A stretch of 64,000 bases of DNA from Mobula birostris (lineage: Eukaryota): assembly GCF_030028105.1 (NCBI RefSeq), contig NC_092374.1:188450638-188514637 (forward strand), in the 5' to 3' direction. This document shows, piece after piece, positions 1,194-48,124 of this stretch (positions are counted from its first letter, which is position 1; each line of letters begins with the position of its first letter). The position numbers and the translations under genes are program-made. Below the pieces are notes generated by a model. That model saw only the letters and a program-made list of their open reading frames with translations. It was not told the origin of the DNA and made no database searches.

Positions 1194-4100
1194 TAGTGCC
1201 GGATTAACCTAATAGCAAAAGTAGCATTTGCTACTGGCCCCACAGTAAATGCTTGCAAGCTGCAGTCTGGTGAAATCAACATCTCACTGTATTCTCACAA
1301 CGATCTGGCTACGCTGTTGTTTTCATGTCGGGGGAGCTGCATGCTGCATGGTATGTGTGTGCAGGCTTGTGTTGGTTCCTTGCTGTGTTGTGGTGACCTT
1401 TGTGCTATCTCCCATGCTCCCAAGCCGCTGCAGCGTGCGCTGTTACGCTGCTGGAGGGTGCGCCACTGACTTTGATTGTGCGCTATGTTCTGCCATCTGG
1501 ACCAGTTGACAGATTTGTGAAGTTTTTGGATATGGAAGGGCATAGTGCTGAACAGCTCGCTCATAGTTTACTTGACTTTTTAAGGGAAAATGACATTGAT
1601 AGAAAAGACTGCCGTGGTCAAAGTTATGACAATGCCAGCAACATGAGTGGCAAGTATAGTGGCTTACAATCACGAATTAAAGAGCTGAATGAGTGTGCAG
1701 ATTACATTCCATGTTTTGCACATTCACTAATTTGGATGGAAAATGTGCTGCTGAATATTGTCAAGAAGCATTACTTTTCTTTCAATTTGTAGAAAGCCTG
1801 TACACATTTTTTTCTGCTTCTACTTATCGGTGGGATCTCCTTTCTGCTGCATTATCTGATGGTGGTGCTCATTTGCCCATTGTGAAAAGAATGTCAGATA
1901 CTTTATTGTCGCCAAACAATTGATACTAGAGCATACAATCATCACAGCGACATTTGATTCTGCGCTTCGCAATCCCTGGAGTACAAATCGATAGTAAATA
2001 GTAAAAATTTAAATTATGAATCATAAATAGAAAATAGAAAAGGGAACGTAAGCTAGTGCAAAAAACTGAGAGGTAGGTCCGGATATTTGGAGGGTACGGC
2101 CCAGATCCGGGTCAGCATCCGTTCAGCAGTCTTATCACAGTTGGAAAGAAGCTGTTCCCAAATCTGGCCATACGAGTCTTCAAGCTCCTGAGCCTTCTCC
2201 CGGAGGGAAGACGGACGAAAAGTGTGTTGGCTGGATGGGTCGTGTCCTTGATTATCTTAGCAGCACTGCTCCGACAGCGTGCGGTGTAAACTGAGTCCAA
2301 GGACAGAAGATTGGTTTGTGTGATGTGCTGGGCTGTGTTCACGATCTTCTGCAGCTTCTTCTGGTCTTGGACAGGACAACTTCCATACCAGGTTGTGATA
2401 CACCCTAGAAGAATGTTTTCTATGGTGCATCTATAAAAATTAGTGAGGGTTTTAGGGGACAGGCCAAATTTCTTTAGCTTTCTCAGGAAGTAAAGGTGCT
2501 GGTGGGCCTTCTTGGCAGTGAACTCTGCTTGGTTGGACCAAGTCAGGTCATTTGTGATATTGACCCCGAGGATCTTAAAGCTTTTGACCTGTTCCACTTG
2601 CGCACCACCGATGTAAATAGGGTTGTGCGGGCCGCTACTCCTTCTGAAGTCAACAACCAATTCCTTCGTCTTGCTGACGTTGAGGGATAGGTTATTGTCT
2701 TCACACCATGCCACCAGGTTCTTAATTTCCTCTCTGTACTCAAACTCATCATTACCCAAGATATGGCCTACAATTGTGGTGTCATCAGCAAACATATATA
2801 TTGAGTTCGATTGGAACTTGGCTACACAATCATGGGTGTACAGTGAGTACAGCAGGGGGCTAAGTACATAGCCTTGTGGGGCACCGGTGCTCAGAGTAAT
2901 TGTAGAGAAGAGCTTGTCCCTTATTTTTACAGCCTGGGTCCTGTCTGTGAGGAAGTTGAAGATCCAGCTGCAGATCTAAGTGCTAAGACGTAGGTTCCAG
3001 AGCTTAGGGATCAGTTTATTTGGAATGATAGTATTAAAGGCAGAGCTGTAATCAATAAAAAGGAGCCTTACGTATATGTCTATTCTACAAATGTTCCAAA
3101 GAGGAATGTAGGGCCAAAGATGTGGCATTTGCCGTTGACCTGTTGCTCCGGTAGGCGAATTGCAAAGTGTCGAGGTTGACCGGTAGGCTGTGGTTGATGT
3201 GTGCCATAACCAATCGCTCGAAGCACTTCATAGCAATTGATGTCAGAGCCACAGGTCGATAGTCATTTGGGCATGCCACCTTGCTCTTCTTCGGCACCGG
3301 GATCATCGTTGCCTTCTTAAAACACAAGGGGATCTTAGACTGAAGCAAGGAGCAGTTGAAGATGTCAGCAAATATTCCAGCTAGCTCACTTGCACAGGCC
3401 CAGAGAACCTGTCCTGGGACGCCATCTGGGCCCGTCGCCTTCCTTGGATTTATCTTCAGGAAGGCCCTTCTAATGTCCTCCTCAGTGATGATGAATCTCG
3501 ATGTCACCAGGTCCGGTTCATCCGGAGGGAGCGGGACGCTCCTTTTCGAATCTTGCATAGAATACGTTAAGTTCATCAGGAAGAGAAGTGCCACAGTTAT
3601 TGATATTCCCAGCCTTTTCTTTGTGCCCAGTGATCTCATTTAGACCCTGCCATAGTCTACCGACATCCCTCTGGTTAGCCTGGGCTTCCAACTTGGTTTG
3701 ATATTGCCTCTTGGCGCCCTTAATGGCTTTCCGGAGTTCACGCCTGGATTCCGTGTAGCGACTGGCATCCCCGGACCTAAAAGCCACAGCTCTAGCCTTC
3801 AAAAGGGACTTGACCTCATAATTCATCCAAGGTTTCCAGTTAGGGAATACCCAGATCGTCTTGCGAGACACACAGTCCTCCATGCATTTCCAAATAAAGT
3901 CTGTGACAGCTGAGGCATACTCCTCGAGGTTAGCTGCCGAGTCCCTGAATACTAACCAGTCCACTGATTCAAAACAGTCACGGAGGACCTCATCCGTTTC
4001 CTCCATCCAACGTGACACTACTTTTGACACCGTGACCTCCCGGTTCAATTTCTGTTTGTAAGCCGGGAGGAGGAGTACGGCCTAATGGTCCGATTTTCTG

Positions 4101-5521: not shown

Positions 5522-6747
5522 ATGAGAGGAGAGTGAAAGAGTTCAGTTTGAGATCAATGACCTTGACACACAACTGCTGAAAATCAACAACCTGAAAACT
5601 TTTCCTCCCATCACCTCCCTGCTGTTGTTTCTCCCCCTCCCCCTCTCTCATCTCTTCCGTTTACGTCAGATCGATTCCCCTACCCACTCACCCACCCACC
5701 CCAACCCCCAATGCAGTCTGACCCACTGAGTCTTTGCAACTTCACTAGAGCCTTGTTTGAAGGCGACCCTCTCCGCCATGAGGAGGTACTTGGTGTCCCT
5801 ATCCCAGACCCTTCCACACCTTCGGGACACTTTCTTCGCCGGCTGTAATGGTCGTACCCGTTATTTCATCCTCCGTCGGATTCACGCCTGCAATCGCCGT
5901 TTTTTTGACTTTGTCATATTAGGCAAAGATCGCAAGATCCTACATCTGCAGACCCCAGAGCCTGCTGGCCATGAAACTAGCAGGCATGAACTTCAGATTG
6001 CAGCCTCTGCCATTGATCTCGCCGGTTCCAACACCTCAGGGCATATTCAAAACCCAGACTCCAGCAACGCCCATGGACACCTTCACAGCGATTGCGCAAC
6101 CACCAACTGCAACTCCAGCCTTGAACTCCAGGCCGGGTCTTTATGTGCTGCTGTTGTGACTCCCGTCTCCCCTTCCCCCACCACCACTCTGCAACCCCGT
6201 CTCCCTCAGATCCCACTGTCAACTCCTGGGCCCCATCTTCCTCTCACCCCAACCCTCCCCTCTCCACTGACACCCCCAGCCTCCCCCCACCCCCTCTGAT
6301 CCCAGCTCTCATCCATGCCGGATCTTTACCATCCCCTCCGACCTTCAACTGTCTCAGGCAGAATGCTCTATCCTCAGTAAGGGCCTCAACTTTGTCCCCC
6401 TTCGCCCACACCTCAGTGAGTTCCGCGTTCGCCATGACACGGAACTGTTCTTCCGCCGTCTCCCAGCCTACTTCTTCGGCAAGGACTCTTCCACCCCCAC
6501 CGATGACCTCTTCTCCCATCTTCAACCCTCCTCCTCTTCATGGACACCCCGCTCTGGTCTTCTGCCTGCTCTGGATCTCTTTATTGCTAACTGCCGATGG
6601 GATATCAACCGTCTCGACTTCACTGCACCTTGTTCCAATTCCAACCTCACTCCTTCTGAACGCTCTGCTCTCCACTCCCTCTGCACTAATCCTAACCTTA
6701 CTATTAAACCCGCCGATAAGGGAGGTGCTGTTGTAGTCTGGCACACT

Positions 6748-7096
6748 AAGATCGTAAGACATAGGAGCAGAATTAGGCCATTCAGCCCATCAAGTCCACA
6801 CCACTATTTCACCATGGCTGATCCCTGATTCCCTGATAGCTTGATGCCCCAACTGATCAGGAATCCACTTTACATCTGTCCACGGACTTGGACTCCACTG
6901 CATCCCACAGATTCATCATTCTTTGGCTAAAAAAATTCCTCTTCACTTCTGTTCTAAAAGGTCGCCCCCCCCCTCCCAATTTTGAGGCTGTGCTCTTTAG
7001 TTCTGGATACTCCCACTAGAGGAAACATCCTCGCCACATACACCTTATCTAGTCCTTTCAACATTCGATGGGTTTCAATGAGATCCCCGTGCATTT
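6748..7096 (-). mobile_element. CR1 3'-end fragment nested in the Penelope ORF
   Basis: Reverse complement of the CR1 terminus (atggcctaattctgctcctatgtcttacgatctt). It splits the PLE peptide VVVWHT|DLYLAEA. Confidence 0.85.
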
Positions 7097-9143
7097 GACC
7101 TCTACCTTGCTGAGGCACAGCGACAACTCGCGGATACCTCCTCTTATTTACCCCTCAATCGTGACCTCACTAAGGAGCACCGGGCCATTGTCTCCCACAC
7201 CATCACCCACTTTATCCACTCAGGGGATCTCCCATCCACTGCTACCAACCTTATAGTTCCCACACCTCGCACTTCCCATTTCTACCTCCTACCCAAGATC
7301 CACAAACCTGCCTGTCCTGGCCGACCTATTGTCTCAGCTTGCTCCTGCCCCACCGAACTCGTTTCTGCATACCTCGACATGGTTTTATTCCCCCCTTGTT
7401 TAATCCCTTCCGACCTATGTTCGTGACACTTCTCATGCTCTTAAACTTTTCGGTGATTTTAAGTTCCCTGGCCCTCACTGCTTTATTTTCACCATGGATG
7501 TCCAGTCCCTATATACTTCCATCCCCCATCAGGAAGGTCTCAAATCTTTCCGCTTCTTTTTGGATTCCAGACCTAATCAGTTCCCCTCTACCACCACTCT
7601 GCTCCGTCTAGCGGAATTAGTCTTTACTCTTAATAACTTCTCCTTTGGCTCCTCCCACTTTCTCCAAACTAAAGGTGTAGCTATGGGCACCCGTATGGGT
7701 CCTAGCTATGCCTGCCTTTTTGTTGGCTTTGTGGAACAATCTATGTTCCGAACCTATTCTGGTATCTGTCCCCCACTTTTCCTTCACTACATCGACGTCT
7801 GCATTGGCGCTGCTTCCTGCACGCATGCTGAGCTCGTTGACTTTATTAACTCTGCCTCCAACTTTCACCCTGCCCTCAAGTTTACCTGGTCCATTTCTGA
7901 CACCTCCCTCCCCTTTCTAGATCTTTCTGTCTCTATCTCTGGAGACAGCTTATCTACTAATGTCTACTATAAGCCCACTGACTCTCACAGCTATCTGGAC
8001 TATTCCTCTTCTCACCCTGTCTCTTGCAAAAATGCCATCCCCTTCTCGCAATTCCTCCGTCTCCGCGGCATCTGCTCTCAGGATGAGGCTTTTCATTCCA
8101 GGACAAGGGAGATGTCCACCTTTTTTTTCAAGAAAGGGGCTTCCCTTCCTCCACCATCAATTCTGCTCTCAAATGCATCTCCCCCATTTCATGCACATCT
8201 GCTCTCACTCCATCCTCCCGGCACCCCACGAGGAATAGGGTTCCCCTGGTCCTCATGTACCACCCCACCAGCCTCCGGGTCCAACAAATAATTCTCCGTA
8301 ACTTCCGCCACCTCCAACAGGATCCCACCACTAAGCACATCTTTCTCTCCCCCCCTCCACCTTCCACAGGGATCACTCCCTATGCGACTCCCTTGTCCAT
8401 TTGTCCCCCCCATCCCTCCCCACTGATCTCCCTCCTGGCACTTATCCTTGTAAGCAGAACAAGTGCTACACATGCCCTTACACTTCCTCCCTTACCACCA
8501 TTCAGGGCCCCAGACAGTCCTTCCAGGTGAGGCGACACTTCACCTGTGAGTCGGCTGGGGTGATATACTGCATCCGGTGCTCCCGATGTGGCCTTCTATA
8601 CATTGGCGAGACCCGATGCAGACTGGGAGATCATTTCACTGAACACCTACGCTCTGTCCACCAGAGAAAGCAGGATCTCCCAGTGGCCACACATTTTAAT
8701 TCCACATCCCATTCCCATTCTGATATGTCTATCCACGGCCTCCTCTACTGTAAAGATGAAGCCACACTCAGGTTGGAGGAACAACAGCTTATATTCCGTC
8801 CGGGTAGTCTCCAACCTAATGGCATGAACTTTGACTTCTCTAACTTCCGCTAATGCCTCACCTCCCCCTCGTACCCCATCCGTTATTTATTTATATACAC
8901 ACATTCTTTCTCTCTCTCCTTTTTCTCCCTCTGTCCCTCTCACTACACCCCTTGCCCATCCTCTGGGTCCCCCCCCCCTTGTCTTTCTTCCTGGGCCTCC
9001 TGTCCAATGATCCTCTCATATCCCCTTTGCCAATCACCTGTCCAGCTCTTGGCTCCATCCCTCCCCCTCCTGTCTTCTCCTATCATTTTGGATCTCCCCC
9101 TCCCCCTCCAACTTTCAAATCTCTTACTCACTCTTCCTTCAGT

Positions 9144-9180
9144 TAGTCCTGACGAAGGGTCTCGGCCGAAACGTCGACTG
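9144..9180 (+). ncRNA. Minimal type I hammerhead ribozyme motif in the Penelope pLTR
   Basis: tagtc-CTGACGA-a-GG(gtctcgg)CC-GAAA-C-GTC^-gactg. Stem I tagtc/gactg, intact CUGANGA and GAAA core, GUC cleavage triplet after 9175, and helix III reduced to palindromic ACGU as known for PLE hammerheads. Confidence 0.8.
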
Positions 9181-9297
9181 TACCTCTTCCTAGAGACGCT
9201 GCTGGCCTGCTGCGTTCACCAACAACTTTGATGTGTGTTGCTTGAATTTCCAGCATCTGCAGCCTTAACTAGACGCCGTAACCTACGCAAGTGGCCT

Positions 9298-11118
9298 AAC
9301 TACAAGATCCTGTCCAAGGCTATCGCCAACAGGGTCAAGTCTGCTCTGGGACAGGTGATCCACCCGGACCAAACCTGTGCTGTACCGGGCAGGAAGATCT
9401 CAGACAGCCTCGCGCTGCTGAGGGACACCATCGCCTACGTGCAGGACAGGGGGGTGGACGCCTGCCTGGTCAGCTTGGACCAGGAGAAAGCCTTCGACAG
9501 GATATCGCACACGTACATGGCGGACGTGCTCTCCAAAATGGGATTTGGGGAGGGAATCCGGAATTGGATCAGACTGCTCTACACAGACATCCGTAGTGCA
9601 GTCCAGGTCAACGGGTGGGAAACAGACAGCTTCCCCATCAGGTCTGGAGTCAGGCAGGGCTGCCCCCTCTCCCCTGTCTTGTTTGTCTGCTGCATAGAAC
9701 CCTTTGTGGAAGCCATCAGGAGGGATGGGGGCATAAGAGGGGTGACGCTGCCAGGCAGTGGAGGGACCCAAGTGAAAACCTCCCTGTACATGGACGACGT
9801 CACCGTCTTCTGCTCTGATCCGAGGTCAGTTCGCAGGTTGATTGGCACCTGCGAACAGTTCGAGCTAGCGTCGGGGGCCAGGCTCAACCGCACAAAGAGC
9901 GAAGCCATGCTCTTTGGCAACTGGCCCGACCGATCCAGCGTCCCCTTCACCATCAGGTCTGACCACGTGAAGGTGTTGGGGATCTGGTTCGGAGGGGCTG
10001 AGGCGTGCAACAAGAACTGGCAGGAGCGGACTGCCAAGGTGAAACAGAAACTGGGACTGTGGGGAGGGCGCTCCCTGTCGATAACGGGCAAGAACCTAGT
10101 CATCAGGTGTGAGGTGCTCTCAGGGCTGCTGTACTTGGCGCAGGTCTGGCCCGTTCCCCGCTCCTACAGCTCGGAAATCACCCGAGCTGTCTTCAGATTC
10201 GTCTGGGGATCCAAGATGGAGCGGGTGAGACGGACCGCCATGCACAAGTCCCTGGACAATGGGGGCAAGAACGTCCCCAATGTTGCCCTCACCCTGATGG
10301 CCAGCTTCGTATGTGGCTGCATCAGGTTGTGTGTAGAGCCCAGGTATGTGGGCACCAAGTACCACTATGTGCCCAGGTTCTACTTGTCGCCCTGGCTACG
10401 AAGGATGGGTCTGGCCCCACTCCCGCGCAACGCCCCAGTCAGCTGGTCGTTGCTGGCATACCTATCCCACGTAGCAAAGTTCTTCCAGGAGAACGCCTTT
10501 GACCACAAGGCCATCAGGCAGTGGTCGGCACGAAGTGTCCTGCAGGCACTGCAGGAGAAGGACGTGATGGACACAGTGGGGTGGTTCCCTGAGCAGACTG
10601 TCCAGTTCATCTGGCAAAATGCCTCATCGCCAGATCTCAGCAACAGGCACCAAGACCTCGCCTGGCTGGCGGTGAGAGGGGCCCTCCCAGTCAGAGCCCT
10701 CCTGTACGCCCGGAACGTCATCTCCGCACCCCACTGCCCACGGGAGGACTGCAGTGAGGAGGAGTCTGTGACCCACCTCTTTGCACACTGCCAGTTCGCA
10801 AAGAGGGTGTGGAGGAGGATGGACGGGCTAGTGTCACGTTTCATCCCCAGCAGCTGCGTGACAGAGGACTCCCTGATCTACGGGCTGTTCCCGGGGACGC
10901 ACACGGAGACCAACATCCGGTGCTGCTGGCAGATCATCAACTCGGTGAAAGACGCTCTTTGGTCAGCCCGAAACTTGATGATCTACCAGCACATGGAGAT
11001 GTCCGTGGCAGAATGCTGCCGACTGGCACACTCTCGGCTGCAGGAGTACGTGCTGAGGGACGCACTGAAACTTGGTGCAGCCACCGCAAGGGCCCGGTGG
11101 GGAAGGACCACAGTATAG
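9298..11118 (+). CDS. Tx1 ORF2 C-terminal part: RT domain + zf-RVT
   Basis: YKILSKAIANRV, SLDQEKAFDRI, SGVRQGCPLSP, LYMDDV and CPREDCSEEESVTHLFAHC, with no stops over ~600 codons. The first ~20 residues of the ORF-track call (from 9235) are flanking DNA. Confidence 0.9.
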   Translation, partial: NYKILSKAIANRVKSALGQVIHPDQTCAVPGRKISDSLALLRDTIAYVQDRGVDACLVSLDQEKAFDRISHTYMADVLSKMGFGEGIRNWIRLLYTDIRSAVQVNGWETDSFPIRSGVRQGCPLSPVLFVCCIEPFVEAIRRDGGIRGVTLPGSGGTQVKTSLYMDDVTVFCSDPRSVRRLIGTCEQFELASGARLNRTKSEAMLFGNWPDRSSVPFTIRSDHVKVLGIWFGGAEACNKNWQERTAKVKQKLGLWGGRSLSITGKNLVIRCEVLSGLLYLAQVWPVPRSYSSEITRAVFRFVWGSKMERVRRTAMHKSLDNGGKNVPNVALTLMASFVCGCIRLCVEPRYVGTKYHYVPRFYLSPWLRRMGLAPLPRNAPVSWSLLAYLSHVAKFFQENAFDHKAIRQWSARSVLQALQEKDVMDTVGWFPEQTVQFIWQNASSPDLSNRHQDLAWLAVRGALPVRALLYARNVISAPHCPREDCSEEESVTHLFAHCQFAKRVWRRMDGLVSRFIPSSCVTEDSLIYGLFPGTHTETNIRCCWQIINSVKDALWSARNLMIYQHMEMSVAECCRLAHSRLQEYVLRDALKLGAATARARWGRTTV

Positions 11119-20110: not shown

Positions 20111-20279
20111 TAGGATGGTCATTTTTGCAGAAGGAGTCACTTTCATACCGAGTTAAGGCAAATTTCTGAGATAAACAAGGGCCTATTGGATGGCACACAG
20201 GTGTAGCATATTTAACACTCAGCCAATGAAAAATGAAAGATGATAAAACTGTTACATAAAAATGTAACTGTTATAACAA

Positions 20280-21080
20280 ACATGAGGATATCTGCAGATG
20301 CTGGAAATCCAGAGGAACGCACACAAAATGCTGGAGGAACACAGCAGATCAGGCAGAATCTATGGAAATGAATAAACAGTCAATGTTTCAGGCCAAGACA
20401 CTTCATCAGGACTGGGAAAAAAGATGGGAAGTCAGAGTAAGAAGGTGGGGGGAGGGGAAGAAGAAGAAGAAGAAGAGGGTGATTAGTAATAAGTGAAAGC
20501 AGAAGAGAGGAGGGGTGAAGTAAAGAGCTGGGAAGTTGATCGGTGAAAGAGATAGAGGACTGGAGAAGGAGGAATCTGACAGGAGAGGGTAGAAGGTCAT
20601 GGAAGAAAGGGAAGGGGAGGAGAAACCAGAGGGAAGTGATGGCAAGAGATAGGAAAGGGAAAGAAACAGGAATGGGGAATCGTGGAAAGAGGGGGGTAAT
20701 TACCAGAAGGTTGATAAATTTACGTTCATGCCATCAGGTTGGAGCCGACCCAGATGGAATATAAGATGTCGTTCCTCCATCCTGAGTGTGGCCTCATTAT
20801 GGCAGTAGAGGCGGCCATGGACTGACTTCGGAATTGGAATGGGAAGTGGAATTGAAGGTGGTGGCTTTTTCTGGTAGATGGAGGGTGGGTGCTCGGTGAA
20901 GTGGCCTGCCAGTCTATGTTGGGTCTCACCGATATACAGGAGGCCACACTGGGAGCATCGGAAGCAGTAAATGTCGCCTCACCTGGAAGGACTGTTTGGG
21001 GTCCTGAATGGTAGTGAGGTTGGAGGTGTAGGGACAGGTGTTAGCACTTGTTCCACTCGCAAGGATAAATACCAGGAGGG
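20280..21080 (-). mobile_element. Older Penelope-like 3' fragment
   Basis: Degenerate GIY-YIG C-terminus and pLTR similar to 18985-20110. Confidence 0.75.
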
Positions 21081-26657: not shown

Positions 26658-27196
26658 CTTATGTTAAATAAAGAAAAAGGAACAGATCACAAATTTTGTT
26701 AGAGTAATCTAGTAAAAATAGAATTTGATGCATGGAATATTTTTGTTTGTGGGGAGGTGAATTATCATCAATAGAATTTCTGATTTTATTTTGCATTTCC
26801 AGAAATTCACTGGTGGGCGAAGCTTTAGCTACTAACGTTGAGCTCTGTAACTCATTAGGACACAAGGACACTAGGAATAAAAGCCAATGTTTAGCTCTCT
26901 AGCCATTCCTGTCTGCTCCATGATTCCCCAAGACTTTTAACGTCAGTTCTATTTTCCGGCACTACCCCCACATCCCTCGATTGCCTTAATAGTCAAAAAG
27001 AGCCTGGTATGTCACCAAAGTCTTTAGCAAATATTTGGGTCCTTAACAAAAACCCTCCAAAGATCCAAATATTGATTCCCCATTGTTTATTCTGTTAATC
27101 ACAGCCTTCATAATTCAGTAGATTAGTCAAAACATGATATCGAGCAAAACAAGACGTGTTGCTCAATGAACCTCAATATAGATGTTAATGATGTAA

Positions 27197-27418
27197 GAGA
27201 TTCTACAGATGCTGGAAATCCTGAGCAACACACACAAGATGCTGGAGGAATTCAGCAGGTCAGGCAGCACCTATAGACAGAAATGAACAGTTGATGTTTT
27301 AGGCTGAGACGCTTCATTAGAATCAGAGCTTCCAATGTCCTGAAGTCCTCATGATGAATCCTTCACTTCCATTGATGCTGCCTGACCTGCTGAGTTCCTG
27401 CAACATTTTCTGTGTTTA
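27197..27418. repeat. Inverted pair of pLTR-derived arms with a ~40-bp spacer
   Basis: gatgctggaggaattcagcaggtcaggcagca... faces ...gatgctgcctgacctgctgagttcctgcaaca. The hammerhead core is mutated. Confidence 0.7.
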
Positions 27419-37758: not shown

Positions 37759-37814
37759 CTGACCATTCTGAGAAGCATTTCCTCTTTTTGATCGTTTTTG
37801 AGCTCGTTTAGAAT
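37759..37814 (-). CDS. Gene B exon 4: first cytoplasmic exon
   Basis: Acceptor ttttttttcttcttag|AT, donor CAG|gtaagc, 56 nt, phase 1-0. Peptide (D)SKRAQKRSKRGNASQNGQ is a basic juxtamembrane segment. Confidence 0.8.
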
Positions 37815-38839
37815 CTAAGAAGAAAAAAAACTCATATTAGTCCCCCTTTGGCAATGATCAGTTGCTGGTCAGAACCTTGAATTGGTACACTCCAGCCAAA
37901 ATAATTATATATTAAACATTTAAAGTTGCACAGCTAACATCTCAACTAATTTTTTCTTCTGTCAAGATTATAAGGAGTTTCTGTCATGCAAACATTATGT
38001 ACTGTACTTAATTAATTTTTAACTGGAAGAGAAATGTTCTATCATAGATTCATTTAACAAATAGGATTGCAGAATATTCTATCATTTTAACTTTTATAGG
38101 AACTTCACAGCACTAATATTTAGTTATTACATTTATTAGTATTTGTTATTTTATTACTTTTGTAAAATGTTAATGTTGAGGAATTAATGGGTTCATGAGC
38201 AACAGTGGTTTCTACACCCATCCTAATTTGGGTGCCACGTATAACAGGCACTCAACTCAACCCATAAGATTGCCATGCAGAGAAAAGTTAAAATGTTACT
38301 AACTACACATATCATCATCATCATCATCATCATCGTGCCATGGAGAAATAGGATGATGTGATAAAGCCATGTATGGTGTAGAAACTGACCTACATACCTT
38401 CACTCAGTGGCCACTTTATTAGGTACACCTGTACGCTTGCTCATTATTTCAAATATTGTATCTAATTAGCTGACCATGTGGTAGCCGTGTCATTTGGTAT
38501 CTTTGACCATGATTGTACTTGGCAATTTTTCCTGCTGAAGACTTCTGACCCAAACATCGACTGTTTATTCTGCTCCACAGACACTGCCTGGCCTGCTGAG
38601 TTCCTCCAACATTTTGAGTGTTGCTGTGGATTTCCAGTGTCTGTCAATTCTCTTGTGTTTATAATGTTGTTTTTATGTGGCTAAACTGATCTCAGATTGA
38701 TAGAGGTACAATATGTAATCCATATAACAGCACAGCATTTTATTAGTTTTGTGTATTAATAAAATAATTGAAAGTTGTAGAAAACACACAAATATCATGC
38801 TCAAGTATAGGTAGGCTGTGCCATATCATAATTGCTCAC

Positions 38840-38941
38840 CTCTCCGTATCTTCATGGTAAAACACAAGAAAAACAAAATAAGAGTAAGAGTAACATATCG
38901 AATTTTGTCTTTGAACCCTGGAGTTTTCTTCTTGGCTGTAT
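38840..38941 (-). CDS. Gene B exon 3: stalk + transmembrane exon
   Basis: Branch ctgac and acceptor ttgttccacag|AT, donor AGAG|gtgagc, 102 nt, phase 1-1. Peptide (D)TAKKKTPGFKDKIRYVTLTLILFFLCFTMKIRR. Confidence 0.82.
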
Positions 38942-40219
38942 CTGTGGAACAAGTCAGGATTGGAAGTTCAAAGTTCAAGGTAAATTTTATTATCAAAGTA
39001 CATATATGTCACCATAAACAACCCTGAGATTAATTTTCTTGTGGATATACTCAACAAATCTCTAGAATAATAACTACAACGGAATCAATGAAAGAGTAGG
39101 GTGTTCAGCCAGCGTGCAGAAGACAACAGACTGTGCAAATGCAAAAAGAAGGAACAATAATAATAAATAAATAAGCAAGAAATGTCAAGAACATGAGATG
39201 AACAGTCCTTGAAAGTGAGTTCATTGGTTGTAGGAATATTTCAATGATGGGGTAAATCAAGTTATCCTCTTTCGTTGAAGAGCCTGATGGTTGAGGGGTA
39301 ATAACGGTTCCTGAACCTGGTGGTGTGAGTCCTGAGGCTCCCGTACCTTCTTCCTGATGGCAGCAATGAGGAGATATTCAGGTATTTCAAACTTGACAAT
39401 TGTCAAGCCAGTACATTCAATTAACCAATTTCCCCCTGGATCAATAAAGTATGACTATGACTATGACTATTTAGAAAGGAGGGGATCTCCAGCATGGGGA
39501 AAATTGGAACTTCTGCTAATTTCCAACTTAGATTTAGATTCTACATATAAATATAAAAATAAACATTTTATAAATATATAACTCAATAGTTTTATATAAA
39601 GTGGCCATACTTGCATTAACTGCTTCCATATAAGTACAAGTGGAAAATTAATTCTTTGGGTTACTGTAGGTTTATTTTTAAACTGATTCTCTCTGTGTGC
39701 ACGTTGAAAGGAACACTTAAAAGACTTTTTGACTTTTAGGGTGTGTCTGAGAAAAAGAAAACAATGTCACTCGCTTTCTGATCCTCTCACTCAGGTGGGA
39801 TAGGGTTGGGGTTACCTTGATGCCACTATGAAAAAGAAATGATTCCTTACTAATCTTTTGTGATTTTCTGACATTGTTAATAGATAAAGGCAAACTAATT
39901 GTGGTCTAACTGAACCCTCAGAAAGTCTTTGATGAGGCACCACAGAAGAGGTTGTTGATAATTAGAGTGCACACTATTGCGAGTAACATACTGACTTGGA
40001 TTGAAGATTGTTTAACGCATGAAAAGTAAAGATTAGGAATCTGACTAGTTTTAACCTGACAAGATTCAGGTTCGGAGATTTTGACCAGTGTAGGTATAGG
40101 AAGTTGGAGAGTGGGGTCCCAGCTACTTACTGGATATGGTGAAATTTTGATAAGGGAATCTTGTATAATATATATGAGACAGCTGGTGATATGAAGTACA
40201 GAGACAAAACACTTCAGGA

Positions 40220-40420
40220 CGCATGATAACATAGCAGTTAGTGCAATGCTACTTGAGTGCCAGTAACTCGGGTTCAGTTCCTGCTGATGTCTGTAAGAAG
40301 TCTGTACGTTCTTCCTGTGACCATGTAGGTTTCCCCCAGGTGCTCTGGTTTCCTCCCACATTCCAAAGATGTACAGGTTAGTAGGTTAACAGGTTGCATG
40401 TGTATTAGGCAGCGTAGGCC
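40220..40420 (+). mobile_element. tRNA-derived SINE, degenerate
   Basis: agcagttagtgcaatgc...gggttcagttcc and the central ccaggtgctctggtttcctcccacattccaaag domain. Confidence 0.65.
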
Positions 40421-41549
40421 TGTTACCAAGCTAAATGAAGAAAGAAAATAGATGGAAGATGCAGAATCCAGATGATAAATCATAATGGGCCATTTCCTAA
40501 TGTCCACTCCCTGTTTGCCAAGATTATTGTTCATCACTCCTATCCACTCCCACCCCCATTCTATCTGCATCTGGTTCCACCTATCACTGCCCAGCCTTTC
40601 TCCCATCCCTTTCTGACAGTTATAACAGCAATCTTTCCTTTTCCCTCTCAGTCCTGATGGAGGGTGTTGTCCTGAAACTTACTCTTTTTGTCTCTGCGGG
40701 TGCTGCTTAAACCTGGTGCTACAAAGTGGCAGTATGGTCTGTGAGGAGAATCCAAACGTGTTTTATGATGGCACAATTAAAATTTGTGACTGGGTAATGA
40801 CACAGCAAGTTGAATATAATGTGCAGAAATACAAGGGAGAAAAAGAGGAAGGAGGAGTATTTTCAAATGGTATGAGATTGACTGCCTTAATAGTCAGAGG
40901 GAGCTGGTTGTCCTTATAACATTTATTAATTTAGAGATGAGGCACAGTTACAGTCCCTTCTGGTCCAACGAGTCCCCAGTCGCCCAGTTAAAGCTCAAAG
41001 GACACTTTATTATCGAAGTACATATACTACCCTGAAATTCATTTTCTTGTGGGCATTCACAATAAATACAAAGAAACACAATAGAAATAGCAAAGATGGA
41101 CAAACAACCAAGGTGCAAAATCACACCCACATGACCAATCCATACATGACCAGAACGTGGGAGGAAACCGAGGCACCCGGAGGAAACCCACACGGTCACG
41201 GGGAGAACGTACAAACTCCTTACGGACAGGGGCGGGAATTGAACCTGGGTCGCTGGTATTGTTATAGCATAATGCTCACTGTGACGTTCCATGCAAACTC
41301 AGAAATAACATACGGGTGCGGTAGGCAAAGGAAGGTAAGTGACTTGAAATTTCAACACTATATATGCTGAAAATACAAAATAAAAAAAATTTGGAAGGTC
41401 TTCAGCCTGAGCTATTAACTCATTTCCTCTTTCCACAGATGTGGTCTGACCTACTGAATGGGTTTATGCCACGTGTATGTTGGCCTTTATTGTAAGAAGA
41501 TTTGAGTACAAAATGAGAAAGTCTGAGTCCATGCCTGGTGTGCTAGGTG

Positions 41550-43955
41550 CAATCTTGATATGGATTTGATGTACGCTAATGTTAAGGATGCATACAGCTC
41601 CTCTCCCCTCCCCCCACTGGGAAGATCAGATCACAACCTGGTGCATCTCAAACCCTGCTACGTGCCTCTGGTGAAGAGTAAACCTGCAACCTCGAGGACA
41701 GTGAGGAAATGGTCGGAGGAGGCTTATGAGGTGCTCCAGGGTTGTTTTGAGGTGACAGACTGGTAGGCACTCTGTGAGCCACATGGAGAAGATATTGATG
41801 GGCTCACAGAGTGCATCACTGATTACACCAACTTCTGTGTAGACTGCAATGTTCCGACAAGAACTGTCCTTTGTTATTCAAATAACAAGCCATGGGTAAC
41901 AAAGGACATTAAGGACATCCTGAATGCTAAAAAGAGGGTGTTTAGATAGATAGATATACTTTATTGATCCCGAGGGAAATTGGGTAAATTGGGTAGAGAT
42001 GGAAGATGGAAGATAGAGACGGAAAGAGGGAGGAGCTGAGGGCAATACAGAGGGACCTGAAAGCCAGGATCAGGGAGGCTAAAGACAGGTACAGGAGGAA
42101 GCTTGAGTGGAAACTCCAGCAGAACAACATGAAAGAGGTCTGGAGGGGGATGAGGGCCATCACTGGGTTCCGGCAAACTAGCAACAGAGGAGCTGAAGGC
42201 AGTGTGGACAGGGCCAATGAACTTAACCGGTTCTTTAACAGATTTGACATTGTGGCCCCTGCCCATCCCCCACATGAGCCATCTGTTGTCGGCCACCAAC
42301 CAACACATATTCCACTCTCCCCTCCTACCCCTCCTCACAGTCCCCCACCCTGCTCTCATGACCATACCCCTCCCCCACACGAAACCACCACGGTGGGCTT
42401 CACAGCTGAACAGGTGAGAAGACAGCTGAAACGTCTCAACCCAAGCAAGGCTGCAGGACCGGATGGTGTCAGTACCAGGGTGCTCAAAGCCCGTGCCCCT
42501 CAGCTATGTGGAGTACTTCGCCATGTATTCAACATGAGCCTGAGGCTCCAGAGGGCTCCTGTATTGTGGAAGACGTCCTGCCTCGTCCCTGTGCCAAAGA
42601 CGCCGCGCCCCAGCGGCCTCAATGACTACAGACCGGTGGCACTGACCTCCCACATCATGAAGACTCTGGAGAGACTTGTTCCGGAGCTGCTCCGGCCTAT
42701 GGTCAGGCCACACTTAGATCCCCTCCAGTTCGCCTACCAGCCCCGACTAGGAGTTGAGGATGCATCATCTACCTGCTGAACCGTGGCTACGTCCTCCAGC
42801 GAGCACCGTAAGGGTCATGTTTTTTGACTTCTCCAGTACGTTCAACACCATCCGTCCTGCTCTGCTGGGGGAGAAGCTGACAGCGATGCAGGTGGATGCT
42901 TTCCTGGTGTCATGGATTCTTGATTACCTGACTGGCAGACCACAGTACGTGTGCTTGCAACACTGTGTGTCCGACAGAGTGATCAGCAGCACTGGGGCTC
43001 CACAGGGGACTGTCTTGTCTCCCTTTCTCTTCACCATTTACACCTCGGACTTCAACTACTGCACAGAGTCTTGTCATCTTCAGAAGTTTTCTGATGACTC
43101 TGCCATTGTTGGATGCATCAGCAACGGAGATGAGGCTGAGTACAGGGCTATGGTAGGAAACTTTGTCACATGGTGTGAGCAGAATTATCTGCAGCTTAAT
43201 GTGAAAAAGACTGAGGAGCTGGTGGTAGACCTGAGGAGAACTAATGTACTGGTGACCCCTATTTCCATCCAGGGGGTCAATGTGGACATGGTGGAGGAAT
43301 ACAAATACCTGGGGATACGAATTGACAATAAACTGGACTGGTCAAAGAACACTGAGGCTGTCTACAAGAAGGGTCAGAGCCGTCTCTATTTCCTGAGGAG
43401 ACTGAGGTCCTTTAACATCTGCTGGACAATGCTGAGGATGTTCTAAGAGTCTAAGAGTCTGTAGTGGCCAGTGCTATCATGTTTGCTGTTGTGTACTGGA
43501 GCAGCAGGCTGAGGGTAGCAGACACCAACAGAATCAACAAACTCATTCGTAAGGCCAGTGATGTTGTGGGGATGGAACTGGACTCTCTGACGGTGGTGTC
43601 TGAAAAGAGGATGCTTTCTAAGTTGCATACCATCTTGGACAATGTCTCCCATCCACTACATAATGTACTGGTTGGGCACAGGAGTACATTCAGCCAGAGA
43701 CTGATTCCACCGTGATGCAACACTGAGCGTCATAGGAAGTCATTCCTGCCTGTGGCCATCAAACTTTACAACTCCTCCCTTGGAGTGTCAGACACCCTGA
43801 GCCAATAGGCTGGTCCTGGACTTATTTTCTGGCATAATTTACATATTACTATTTAACTATTTATGGTTTTATTACTATTTAATTATTTATGGTGCAGCTG
43901 TAATGAAAACCAATTTCCCCTGGGATCAATAAAGTATGACTATGACTATGACTAT
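41550..43955 (+). mobile_element. Rex1/Babar-type LINE, 5'-truncated, few lesions
   Basis: GRSDHNLV (APE end), [40 protein letters not shown] and KFSDDSA. 3' ttcccctgggatcaataaag(tatgac)n tail. Confidence 0.92.
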
Positions 43956-44920
43956 ATCCTCACTTAAATGACAACAGTTTAGATGGAGAGCAGCCAAGAT
44001 GCAGCTGAATGGTTCTTGGGACACTGGATCTGTGAATGAGGAGAAAGCCATAGTTGTCTTGAGCTTAGTGCAGTAGAATGTCATTGAAACATATAATATG
44101 AGGGTTGGACTAAGCAGCATAAATGTATGGAGACTGGCTTAAGGTCAGAGCCTCAAATAATGGGCAGGCCATTCAGGCCTGAGGTTAAAGAAATGTCTTC
44201 AGTCTGAAAGTGGTGAATGTTTGGCATTTTCTAACCTATGGCGAGAAGGCAGTCCGTGGAGAAGAGTGTGGATTTTTGGAAACCACATCTTTGAAATAAT
44301 CTTTAAAACGTGCCACCTCTTTAGTGTTATACACACGCTCCAATCTTCTTTTGTGGTTAGGCATCAAATTCTGTAAATTAGCCTTCAAGATTCCTGTGAT
44401 GTTTAACTACATTGAAAACCTGCATGAATACAACTCGCTGGGCTCGTCGTGCCTCATTTTAAATACAGTTTCAAAGTTCAAGGTAAATTAATTGTCAAAG
44501 TACATGTATGTAACCATATACTATCCTGAGATTCATTTTCTGCCAGGCATTCACATTAGAATAAAGAAATACTATAGAATCACAGATAAAACTACACACA
44601 AGGACTGGCAAACAACCAGCGTGCAAAAGAAAACAAACTGCAAATACAGTAACTGAATAAACAGACAAATAACCAAATGCTTTGTGTAAGAAATAAATAA
44701 ATATATAGACAGATACTGGGAACGTAAGTTCTAGAGTCGTTGAAAATGTGTCTACAGGTTGTGGATCAGATCTATGTTGAGGTGAGTGGAGTCACCCACG
44801 TTGGTTCAGGAGCCTGATGGTTGAAGTGTAATAACTGTTTCTGAACCTGATAATGTGGGACCTAAGACTCCTGTACCTCCTTCGTGCTGGCAGCAGCGAG
44901 AAGAGAGCAAGGCACGGCAA

Positions 44921-45044
44921 AAAAGTCCTTAAAAGTGTTTTCTGTACGCCAGATCAAACTAATCAACGCTTTAAAAGATAACTACAGTTTATACGTTTCC
45001 CACCTACAGTCCGAATCCAAACATTCTCAACAGACGGAACAAAA
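44921..45044 (+). repeat. Copy A of a ~124-bp local direct duplication flanking the gene B IgV exon
   Basis: Aligns by eye at roughly 80% with 45854-45978; shared blocks taaaagtgttttctgt, tcaacgctttaaa and cagtccgaatccaaacattctcaaca. Confidence 0.85.
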
Positions 45045-45063
45045 CTACTGGGAAGTTACCTAC

Positions 45064-45456
45064 CCATTATCTCCCCGTGGCCGGTTTCATTTGCGTTGTC
45101 AGCCTGGACAACTAAGTTAAAGCTTCCTCTTTCGATTCCTCTTGCCTGGCTAACAGATAATTCATAAAGTCCACTGTCGTTAATCTGCAAATGTTTCAGC
45201 AGCAGCGAAGCGTTCTCCGGGAAAAGAACAACCCGGTGTTTATAGAGATCAGAGTACGACATGACGTGGCTGCATTCATCTGAGTTGCTGTTTCGCTCTG
45301 ATATGCATCTGTATTCCACAATTCTTTTCCCAGCCCTGCTCCATTTGATCCGCAGATAACCCCGTGGGTCCGAGATTGTGTAAGAGGCGGGTAGGAGCAC
45401 AGAATGGTCCACGCTTCCGTTCAAGCGGTTCTGATGTACCCTCAGTGTTGCAACGG
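45064..45456 (-). CDS. Gene B exon 2: IgV-type domain + short stalk
   Basis: Acceptor ttttgtatcactctccacctttag|CC, donor ATGG|gtaggt, 393 nt, phase 1-1. Motifs SVLLPAS, IKWS, HRVVLFPENASLLLKHLQINDSGLYELSV; no B/F-strand Cys. Four sequons (NGS, NAS, NDS, NET). Confidence 0.92.
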
Positions 45457-45853
45457 CTAAAGGTGGAGAGTGATACAAAACGAAATGATATTTAAATGAT
45501 AAAACTAATCATTGCTTAAACGACAGTGTATCACTAATTACAAAAACGAAAACGCTCTCCGGTGTTTGACATTCCGCCGCCACCCGTAGACAGGGACATT
45601 AGAGGCGGAGTGGGCCATTCGGCCTTCGAACCTGCTCCGCCATTTAATACGATCATGGCGAATGTCAATACTGTGTTACTGCTCCCTTCTCAGGACCACG
45701 ATCTCTTTGCCAGAAGAAAGTACCTACAAAGTGACAAACAGGAGAACATCTGCAGATGCTGGAAATCTAAGCAACACGCACAAATGCTGGAGGAACTCAG
45801 CAGGTCAAGCAGCGCCTATGGATGCTGAGACGCTTCAGCAGACTGGAGGGAAC

Positions 45854-45978
45854 AAAAGTCCCTAAAAGTGTTTTCTGTCCATCAGAACAAACTCCTCAAC
45901 GCTTTAAAGGATAACCACAGTTAATATATTCTACCAGCTGCAGTCCGAATCCAAACATTCTCAACAAACCTAACAAAA
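45854..45978 (+). repeat. Copy B of the local duplication, lying between two oppositely oriented pLTR halves
   Basis: Flanked by a minus-oriented pLTR piece (~45726-45845) and a plus-oriented piece (~45983-46045). Confidence 0.8.
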
Positions 45979-46045
45979 GAGAACGTCTCGCCCCGAAACG
46001 TCGACTGTACTCTTTCGCATAGGTGCTGCCTGGCCTGCTGAGTTC

Positions 46046-46498
46046 TTTTTTATTATTTCAAAATATACTTTATTCAAAAATAAAATTACATACAATAAAC
46101 CATTCAATGAATCAATCCTTTACATACGTTTCCATTATGGTCTCTACATATCCATACTTTTGGCCACCCACGTGGCGCTCTGTTGTTTCACCTTCCCACA
46201 CCATTGTTGAGGGATACAGTATACTCCCCGCCACCCGACCCCTCCCACTCCCGCGGGAGAAGAACCCTAAACAGTGGTCCTTCCCCATCGGGCCCTTGCG
46301 GTGGCTGCACCGAGTTTCAGCGCGTCCCTCAGCACGTACTCCTGCAGCCGAGAGTGTGCCAGTCGGCAGCATTCTCCCACGGACATCTCCATGTGCTGGA
46401 AGATCATCAAGTTTCGGGCCGACCAAAGAGCGTCTTTCACCGAGTTGTTGATCTGCCAGCAGCACCGGATGTTGGTCTCCGTGTGCGTCCCCGGGAAC
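46046..46498 (-). mobile_element. Tx1 3' fragment (last ~77 codons + 3' UTR + A tail)
   Basis: FPGTHTETNIRCCWQINNSVKDALWSARNL...ARARWGRTTV is near-identical to the end of 9298-11118; the UTR has diverged (different subfamily). Confidence 0.92.
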
Positions 46499-47633
46499 AT
46501 CCGATTTCCTCTGTGTTCGTGATCTTTTGTTGCTGTAGCCCACCCACTTCAAGGTTCGACAGGCTGTGCGTTCAGAGATGCTCTTCCGCACATCACTGTT
46601 GTAACGAGTGGTTATTTGAGTTACTGTCGCCTTCTTGTGAGCTTGAAGAAACAGTCTGGCCATTCTCATTTGATATCTTAATATACCTAACTCCTTAAAT
46701 ACTTTAATTACTTGTCTTCAGTTGTCTTCTGTGGTCGGGAATTTCAAATGAATACAACACGGCGATATTCTTGGTCCCCAGGGATTTAATGCGGGAACTT
46801 TATATTCGCCGGGTCAGAATCTGAATTATTTCCTAACATCACTGGTAACTGTTACTATTAATACTATGATTCCTCCAAAAGGACCACAGCCCTGTCGTAG
46901 TTTGGAGGCTTGTATGCCTCAATGACCGGGAGAGCTTTGTTGGCTGGAGGCAGGGGCTTTGTGGTTTGGCTCTTGGTAGGGTCGCCCATGCCAAACAGGT
47001 CAATGGGCAGAGGCCAGACGAAGAGTGGCCTACCAGTCCTCCAGGTTCGGGGGTTCAGCTCAGGGCGAACAACCCAAACTGGTAAAACAAAATTGTTACG
47101 GAAACTTCAACATCTGAGTGCGATGGTGTGCTGAGTCCCCGGGTGGGACTTGCATGTCTAACAGTAGTCGTGAAAGCCGAGCTGTGACACGAAGAATCCC
47201 TGAACACCGCCAGAGATGGTGGACCTTCTCTGCTGCCCCAAATGCCAGCGGTGAGAAATAGGCAGTCAGTATCACTAAGATTGTAGTGTTAATCACGTTC
47301 TTTGTAGCATTCCGCCGGCAATTCTATGCCTTCTTCTTGTAGTTTTACACTGATCGATGAACAGTGTAGGGAGGTTGTCAAAGAGGAGCAGGGGCATCCC
47401 AGTGGAACTGGGGGCAGTCTGGCCCTGCGATTATCCACCCGATAATCACACAAAAATAATCAAACCAGGTGCTCACTTTGAGCAGAACCACGATTTACAG
47501 CGGTGTAAATATATTTTCCAAAACGGTAGCTCCGCTGGATATATTTTCGCCAAGGTAATCATCCGTGATATTTTTCCTACTCTTCGGCAATTATGATTGC
47601 AAGATGGACATTACACGAGTAGGAAGCACTTAC

Positions 47634-47709
47634 CCATCGGGACCAGTAGAGTAAAAGTTAATAGCTGGACGCCATACACCCTGACCCCCTCACTTCGTCT
47701 GGGTGACAT
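47634..47709 (-). CDS. Gene B exon 1: signal-peptide (leader) exon
   Basis: aaaATG (A at -3) gives MSPRRSEGVRVYGVQLLTFTLLVPM + G|gtaagt. The phase-1 donor joins in frame to the 45064-45456 exon (junction codon GCC). Confidence 0.87.
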
Positions 47710-47995: not shown

Positions 47996-48124
47996 NNNNN
48001 NNNNNNNNNNNNNNNNNNNNNNNNNNNNNNNNNNNNNNNNNNNNNNNNNNNNNNNNNNNNNNNNNNNNNNNNNNNNNNNNNNNNNNNNNNNNNNNNNNNN
48101 NNNNNNNNNNNNNNNNNNNNNNNN
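47996..48124. other. Assembly gap (129 N)
   Basis: Run of N characters about 290 bp upstream of the gene B ATG. Confidence 1.

Follow-up and report, generated by a model that had tools for sequence, protein, structure and literature searches.

Structure of gene B

We analyzed a 64-kb stretch of genomic DNA from the manta ray Mobula birostris (64,000 nucleotides of contig NC_092374.1, here called the window; positions are counted from its first base). A preliminary description of the window, made from the sequence alone, had placed two neighboring genes there, A and B, each encoding an immunoglobulin (Ig) domain of the V type. This report concerns gene B. We found that gene B is an intact five-exon gene for a type I membrane glycoprotein of 238 residues, and we regard the gene model as close to certain.

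The first four coding exons, all on the minus strand, lie exactly where the preliminary description had placed them. Exon 1 (47709-47634; 76 nt) begins with the ATG at 47709-47707, which has an A at -3, and encodes most of the signal peptide before a phase-1 donor (GTAAGT). Exon 2 (45456-45064; 393 nt) encodes the end of the leader and the entire V-set Ig domain, exon 3 (38941-38840; 102 nt) the stalk and the transmembrane helix, and exon 4 (37814-37759; 56 nt) the basic stop-transfer sequence and the juxtamembrane segment. In these exons, the donors are all GT and the acceptors all AG behind a stretch of pyrimidines; the exon phases run 1,1,1,0. Joined together, the four exons make an open frame of 209 codons.

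The four-exon model was correct as far as it went, but it was incomplete. Because exon 4 ends in phase 0 on a good donor (GTAAGC), the gene had to extend past it. We located a fifth exon at ~26.65 kb by tblastn with a stingray orthologue obtained in the protein search (P0001), and then read the exon directly. Exon 5 (26657-26568, minus strand; acceptor AG at 26659-26658) contains 87 coding bases followed by the stop codon TGA (26570-26568). It encodes the last 29 residues, including the motifs VFYSDM and SEYAGI. An AATAAA polyadenylation signal (26478-26473, minus strand) lies ~90 nt past the stop codon. Gene B spans 47709 to ~26473, and so reaches ~11.3 kb beyond the lower end, at 37759, of the earlier model.

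The translation of the five exons is identical to the RefSeq protein XP_072113459.1 (P0157) over 238 of 238 residues. Termination by read-through after exon 4 is ruled out, as joining the donor at 37759 to exon 5 gives this exact match. The RefSeq entry (238 residues) is named "uncharacterized protein [Mobula birostris]". Gene B is already predicted in RefSeq, then, but is unnamed and undescribed, which answers a point that the preliminary description had left open. The match also agrees with its attribution of the DNA to a cartilaginous fish. The same protein is present in Mobula hypostoma as isoform X2. Isoform X1 of that species has an alternative last exon (P0175, residues 210-244) matching window positions 20255-20359 and 27190-27270, both on the minus strand, with 77% and 63% identity; this exon is probably derived from a repeat.

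A tblastn search with 200 family proteins found no hidden C2 exon and no second V exon in the introns of gene B, and no second gene B-like V exon was found within the 64-kb window. Upstream of the gene, an out-of-frame ATG 10 nt before the start codon opens a 10-codon open reading frame (ORF; 47719-47690, minus strand) that overlaps the main ATG. This is a possible upstream ORF if it lies inside the 5' untranslated region (UTR). The only run of Ns in the window (129 bases, 47996-48124) is ~290 bp upstream of the ATG, and because of it the promoter and 5' UTR are not fully readable.

The encoded protein

We found that the protein has the layout proposed in the preliminary description: a leader, a single V domain, a stalk, a transmembrane helix and a tail that is basic next to the membrane. 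Pfam, AlphaFold2 and hydropathy all support a type I, single-V protein whose V domain lacks the usual disulfide. The leader (residues 1-28) ends in A-V-A, a cleavage-type end, and is predicted to be cleaved there. Its hydrophobic core contributes the second-highest Kyte-Doolittle window of the protein (residues 14-32).

The V-set domain occupies approximately residues 29-143. Exon 2 alone scored 30.0 bits against Pfam V-set (PF07686; curated cut-off 26) and 23.2 bits against Pfam Receptor_2B4 (curated cut-off 21). An AlphaFold2 model of the domain, made from a 62-sequence alignment, had a predicted local distance difference test score (pLDDT) of 90.1 and contained strands A, A', B, C, C', C'', D, E, F and G. 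There is no cysteine in strand B or strand F. A disulfide between these strands is typical of V-set domains, yet it is absent in the CD2, CEACAM and HEPACAM-like subgroups. The only cysteines in the ectodomain are C76, in strand C', and C87, at the start of strand C'', which flank the base of the C'-C'' hairpin. Since a C-x10-12-C pair is present in 11 of 11 orthologues (below), C76 and C87 probably form a disulfide that staples this hairpin. The ectodomain also has four N-glycosylation sequons, at N38, N107, N118 and N148.

A stalk of 25 residues leads to the membrane helix, which runs from I170 to K187 or I188 and coincides with the highest Kyte-Doolittle window (residues 170-188). It has the pattern K-[IV]-R-Y-x-x-L ... 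F-x-C-F-T-x-K, with just 15 hydrophobic residues between R171 and K187. A full-length AlphaFold2 model contained a low-confidence helix at residues 170-191; with an overall pLDDT of 51, this model is usable only for the extent of the helix. The cytoplasmic tail has 48 residues. It is basic beside the membrane and ends in the two tyrosine motifs, VFYSDM (motif 1) and SEYAGI (motif 2).

Orthologues and selection

We found orthologues of gene B, 232-255 residues long, in at least 11 species of sharks and rays. The rays are Mobula (two species), Hemitrygon, Hypanus and Pristis, and the sharks are Heptranchias, Mustelus, Scyliorhinus, Heterodontus, Cetorhinus, Stegostoma and Hemiscyllium. The orthologue in the sawfish (Pristis) also has five exons, of 76, 393, 96, 56 and 87 nt, and the zebra-shark (Stegostoma) orthologue has five coding blocks.

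Comparison of manta and sawfish by the Nei-Gojobori method gave a ratio of nonsynonymous to synonymous substitution rates (dN/dS) of 0.36 overall, 0.31 for the V domain and 0.34 for exon 5. With a dN/dS of 0.36, gene B is under purifying rather than diversifying selection. Gene B is the manta member of a single-copy elasmobranch orthologue group evolving under purifying selection, and this differs from the diversification expected of pathogen-driven receptors.

Conservation is uneven along the protein. We counted invariant positions in each segment over 11 orthologues. The membrane helix was invariant at 9 of 19 positions, including R171, Y172, C183 and K187. None of the 25 positions of the stalk was invariant, nor were more than 2 of the 22 in the juxtamembrane segment and 1 of the 29 in exon 5. 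By this count, the helix is the best-conserved part of gene B outside the Ig core. Motif 1, ancestrally V-L-Y-S-[DE]-[IM], keeps its tyrosine in 7 of the 11 species and reads VLYSDI in sawfish and VLYSEI in horn shark (Heterodontus). The tyrosine of motif 2 is confined to Mobula and Hemitrygon; all sharks and the sawfish have serine at this position.

One orthologue has a different C-terminus. In the Hypanus sabinus protein (P0001; 222 residues), the rest of exon 4 and exon 5 are read in another frame, giving an unrelated C-terminus of 20 residues. The change corresponds to a one-base difference at a run of five As (37789-37785, exon 4, minus strand), as if the run were one base longer. It is either a true lineage-specific frameshift or a homopolymer error in the assembly. 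We considered the Hypanus tail (KKRKCFSEWS...) as the reading for gene B and rejected it: it lies in another frame in manta DNA, and manta, sawfish and Hemitrygon share the phase-0 frame.

Related genes in elasmobranchs

An exhaustive HMMER search yielded 245 cluster representatives at E<=0.001, of which 13 had E<=1e-30. All close family members are from elasmobranchs, and several are on the same chromosome-sized contig as gene B. Database names across the family are inconsistent and include HEPACAM2-like, CEACAM4-like, A33-like, CD276-like and contactin rig-6-like.

We distinguished three types of helix and tail in the family. The gene B type has the arginine-bearing helix. Members of the second type (Mobula P0018, Hemitrygon P0016 and Pristis P0007) have an uncharged helix and one or two YAEL motifs. 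VEYATV is present in P0018 and P0016 as well; at that site the sawfish P0007 reads VEGATV. In the third type, the helix is likewise uncharged and the tail terminates in VEYDKI (P0012 and P0181) or AEYDKI (P0155/P0184). The V domains of the uncharged-helix paralogues with VEYATV or VEYDKI are 49-56% identical to that of gene B. The last exons of the paralogues are homologous to exon 5 of gene B and carry canonical ITIMs (immunoreceptor tyrosine-based inhibitory motifs).

The leading candidate as an inhibitory relative of gene B, judging from its predicted tail, is Mobula P0018/P0164. The gene is on the same chromosome-sized contig, and its RefSeq accession is six numbers away from that of gene B. 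The tail contains a tandem repeat of ~33 residues per copy, each copy with TQYAEL, followed by the canonical ITIM VEYATV.

In a tree of V domains, the gene B orthologues of batoids formed a clade with support of 100/99. This clade was nested in a 95/95 clade together with the second type and all the shark genes. Monophyly was rejected by approximately unbiased (AU) tests both for the arginine-helix genes (p 0.017) and for the second type (p 0.034), although these tests were post hoc, with the groups named after the tree had been viewed. The AU results are a weak hint of either V-exon exchange or independent duplication in sharks.

The preliminary description had proposed that gene B belongs to a diversified cluster of immune receptors. 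Relatives of gene B do occur on the same chromosome-sized contig, and some of them are ITIM-tailed. However, gene B itself is not diversified: it is single-copy in at least 11 species, with the low dN/dS given above. In sawfish, paralogues are 0.3 Mb and 2.2 Mb from gene B, the ITIM-bearing one being that at 2.2 Mb. The family is dispersed along one chromosome and is not a tight cluster.

Comparison with known families

We compared gene B with known proteins by fold and by sequence. A Foldseek search of the Swiss-Prot models placed VSTM5 first (E 2e-9, template modeling score 0.76, 24% identity), followed by HEPACAM and HEPACAM2 (E ~1e-8, 25% identity). In the ESM Atlas, VSTM5 clusters were the second and third nearest to gene B (0.95). 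Against the Protein Data Bank (PDB), Foldseek returned only generic V domains (VCBP3, CAR, PD-L1 and TIGIT), with no discrimination between families. Among PDB sequences, the family profile hit CEA and CEACAM1/6 (E ~1e-10), with matches confined to strands D-F, and generic Ig proteins scored equally. The V domains of CD84 and SLAMF6 aligned to the gene B family over their full length. The nearest sequences from outside the elasmobranchs were frog and duck proteins named "CEACAM3/5-like" and frog, sturgeon and ostrich proteins named "HEPACAM2(-like)".

VSTM5 resembles gene B in being a type I glycoprotein of ~200 residues with a leader, a single V domain, a helix and a short tail, and its V domain also matches Receptor_2B4. 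In contrast to VSTM5, gene B has the arginine-bearing helix, the C'-C'' cysteine pair and ITIM-tailed paralogues. The domain VSTM5_C (PF28389), carried by 96-99% of VSTM5-cluster members, is absent from the precomputed (v38-era) Pfam lists of P0157 and its orthologues, which contain only V-set PF07686. Those precomputed lists do include PF28xxx families for other proteins; our local copy of Pfam may predate PF28389. There were no VSTM5-named proteins among the sequence matches to gene B.

The V domains of HEPACAM and HEPACAM2 come next by fold, and automatic annotation names several family members HEPACAM-like or HEPACAM2-like. However, HEPACAM and HEPACAM2 have V and C2 domains and long tails, whereas gene B has no C2 exon and its orthologues are all single-V. 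A genuine bird HEPACAM2 fragment scored just 50 bits against the gene B family profile. CD2/SLAM receptors likewise have a V domain without the B-F disulfide, and Receptor_2B4 is above its cut-off in gene B; gene B differs from them in having neither a membrane-proximal C2 domain nor an immunoreceptor tyrosine-based switch motif (TxYxx[VI]) in its tail.

With the CEACAMs, especially the single-N-domain CEACAM3/4/19 and the CEACAM-like genes of frogs, birds and fish, gene B shares a disulfide-less V (N) domain. The CEACAM family also mixes ITIM-tailed with other members. Unlike typical CEACAM1-related genes, gene B is slow-evolving. CEACAMs have been reported from cartilaginous fish (PMC3628338, PMC13278318), and in lower vertebrates a gene is assigned to the family by its synteny with LIPE, TOMM40, CXCL17 and TMEM145 (PMC3628338, PMC13278318, CXCL17 preprint). 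We saw none of these four genes within the 64 kb of the window, nor in the flanks (+/-10 kb) of the loci in sawfish and zebra shark.

We found no well-known gene of which gene B is a clear one-to-one orthologue; VSTM5 and HEPACAM are its closest mammalian folds, VSTM5 being the nearest, but VSTM5_C is absent from the precomputed Pfam list of gene B. Because it fails defining features of VSTM5, HEPACAM and CD2/SLAM, we keep gene B outside any single family. We file it as an unnamed member of the disulfide-less-V group that comprises CD2/SLAM, CEACAM and HEPACAM/VSTM5.

A further comparison concerns the membrane helix and implies no homology. In adaptor-coupled receptors of the NKp46, Fc-alpha-RI and GPVI type, the membrane helix bears a basic residue close to its outer end. 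Similarly, gene B has an invariant arginine two residues into a short hydrophobic helix, and it has ITIM-tailed relatives with uncharged helices. It differs from that type in retaining a 48-residue tail with tyrosine motifs.

Gene A and the rest of the window

Gene A is a separate neighboring gene of the V+C2 type. Its V exon (986-684, minus strand) encodes a cysteine-free domain that passes Pfam V-set (28 bits). As the preliminary description had noted, genes A and B have the same orientation, both have disulfide-less V domains and they share little sequence identity. We found that the two V domains are alike over 31 residues only (29% identity, E 0.003), in the generic region of strands D-F.

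The sawfish gene B orthologue is followed, 7.4 kb downstream and on the same strand, by a counterpart of gene A that encodes 522 residues with V-set and I-set/Ig domains and whose V exon shares 67% identity with that of gene A. In zebra shark, a comparable gene for 436 residues is 2 kb downstream of the gene B orthologue; we did not find the V exon of gene A within the zebra-shark locus, probably since the long first intron of that gene runs past the end of the stretch analyzed. In Chiloscyllium punctatum, one model (P0179; 516 residues) fuses the gene B and gene A orthologues: residues 17-140 are the V domain of gene B and residues 180-276 that of gene A, after which comes an I-set domain. 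The gene A part of P0179 aligns to CEACAM1 over both its V and C2 domains. The order B-then-A is real in manta and sawfish, is seen by domain content in zebra shark, and probably extends to sharks. The tandem consists of two different genes and is not a receptor pair.

The long first intron of gene A contains long ORFs with reverse-transcriptase-like motifs, at 9235-11118 and 7494-8291 on the plus strand and at 2112-2795 and 3085-4048 on the minus strand. One of them, of 627 residues, carries YMDD. These ORFs look like retrotransposon debris. The region from 6000 to 10000 has a GC content of 0.51-0.55, a strong C skew (GC skew down to -0.41) and proline/serine-rich ORFs, and looks like low-complexity or repeat sequence.

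A proposed mode of action and its alternatives

We think it probable that gene B encodes a conserved single-V receptor that signals mainly via its arginine-bearing helix, with the tail motifs secondary. Like the related domains of CD2, CEACAM and HEPACAM, the V domain would bind a ligand that is conserved and probably encoded by the host. Because the V domain and the helix are conserved and the tail is poorly conserved, the output would be expected to depend on interactions within the membrane, and the signal would pass mainly through the conserved helix. Near the outer end of the helix, the invariant R171 could recruit a partner subunit; near the inner end, the invariant C183 may be lipidated (palmitoylation). 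The weakly conserved ITIM-like tyrosine motif or motifs of the tail would provide a secondary, lineage-variable output, and the ITIM-tailed paralogues with uncharged helices would be inhibitory relatives in the same family. Taken by itself, the partner mechanism of the helix is tentative, and we give it somewhat less than an even chance.

Several observations weigh against this proposal. R171 lies right at the margin of the hydrophobic run and could be a mere flanking residue. Classical adaptor-coupled receptors are usually short-tailed and without motifs, and gene B has tyrosine motifs in its tail. Those tyrosines are themselves not conserved across the orthologues. The full-length AlphaFold2 model is of low confidence. 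A survey published in 2014 (PMC4016189) reported shark genomes to be without an FcR gamma chain; our literature search on DAP12 and FcR gamma in cartilaginous fish gave this negative report alone.

The tail might instead be the main output. Gene B would then be a plain inhibitory receptor, in which ITIM-like motifs are phosphorylated on ligand binding and recruit SH2 phosphatases, as in CEACAM1 and TIGIT, with the helix a mere anchor. SEYAGI fits the ITIM consensus [SIVL]xYxx[IVL], motif 1 reads VLYSDI in sawfish and VLYSEI in horn shark, exon 5 is constrained in its coding frame (dN/dS 0.34), and the homologous last exons of the paralogues hold canonical ITIMs. However, neither tyrosine is conserved: motif 1 has lost it in Hemitrygon, Cetorhinus, Stegostoma and Hemiscyllium, and motif 2 has serine in sawfish and all sharks. 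The annotated Hypanus protein loses the entire tail through its frame change, and conservation of the tail falls far short of that of the helix. We regard a plain inhibitory receptor as unlikely. It is improbable, too, that gene B is a non-immune glycoprotein for adhesion or membrane shaping like VSTM5, perhaps even the elasmobranch VSTM5 orthologue. VSTM5 is a small single-V neuronal protein with multiple N-glycosylation that induces filopodia (PMC5528877), and its rank in the Swiss-Prot fold search and the ESM Atlas, the shared architecture, size and multiple sequons, and the purifying selection, which suits a housekeeping-type ligand, are consistent with this idea. Against it are the missing VSTM5_C in P0157 and all orthologues, the lack of any VSTM5-named sequence match, the fact that RefSeq leaves gene B unnamed, and the ITIM-tailed paralogues in the family.

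The preliminary description had raised the possibility that genes A and B are paired receptors in a diversified immune-receptor cluster, a reading in which the pair diversifies within a rapidly evolving cluster. Their tandem arrangement in one orientation, the lack of the disulfide in both V domains, the ITIM-tailed members of the wider family and the post hoc AU hint of V-exon exchange among paralogues (p 0.017 and 0.034) would fit. However, the two V domains have just the 31-residue generic motif in common, the gene A counterparts (436-522 residues) are multi-domain proteins with V and I-set/Ig domains, and the ITIM-bearing sawfish paralogue is 2.2 Mb away from gene B. The pair is also old and stable, because the B-then-A order is shared by manta and sawfish and, judged by domain content, by zebra shark as well; and gene B has a dN/dS of 0.31-0.36 and one orthologue per species. 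The conservation data largely refute this suggestion, which we now consider very improbable. Finally, it is extremely improbable that gene B lacks function, as a pseudogene or a product of faulty annotation. The frame-shifted tail annotated in Hypanus could be taken to point that way, but the frame is open over five exons with intact splice sites, dN/dS is well below 1, three species share the exon structure and 11 have intact orthologues.

A broader form of the helix-based reading is that the gene B group is the adaptor-coupled (arginine-helix) arm, and the ITIM-tailed paralogues of the P0018 type are the inhibitory arms, of an ancient elasmobranch paired-receptor family with V-exon exchange. 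This is unlikely. If true, a paired-receptor system of the CEACAM/HEPACAM-like kind would date back to the base of jawed vertebrates, and there would have to be a membrane signaling partner in animals reported to be without the FcR gamma chain.

Our results provide a complete, verified gene model, together with a set of orthologues, for an unnamed single-V receptor that is retained in all the sharks and rays sampled. Gene B is a fairly ordinary, conserved gene of the immunoglobulin superfamily and is not a fast-evolving immune novelty. Its Arg/Cys helix, its C'-C'' cysteine pair and its ITIM-tailed paralogues are leads on how receptors of the CEACAM/HEPACAM/VSTM5 type may have been organized in early jawed vertebrates.

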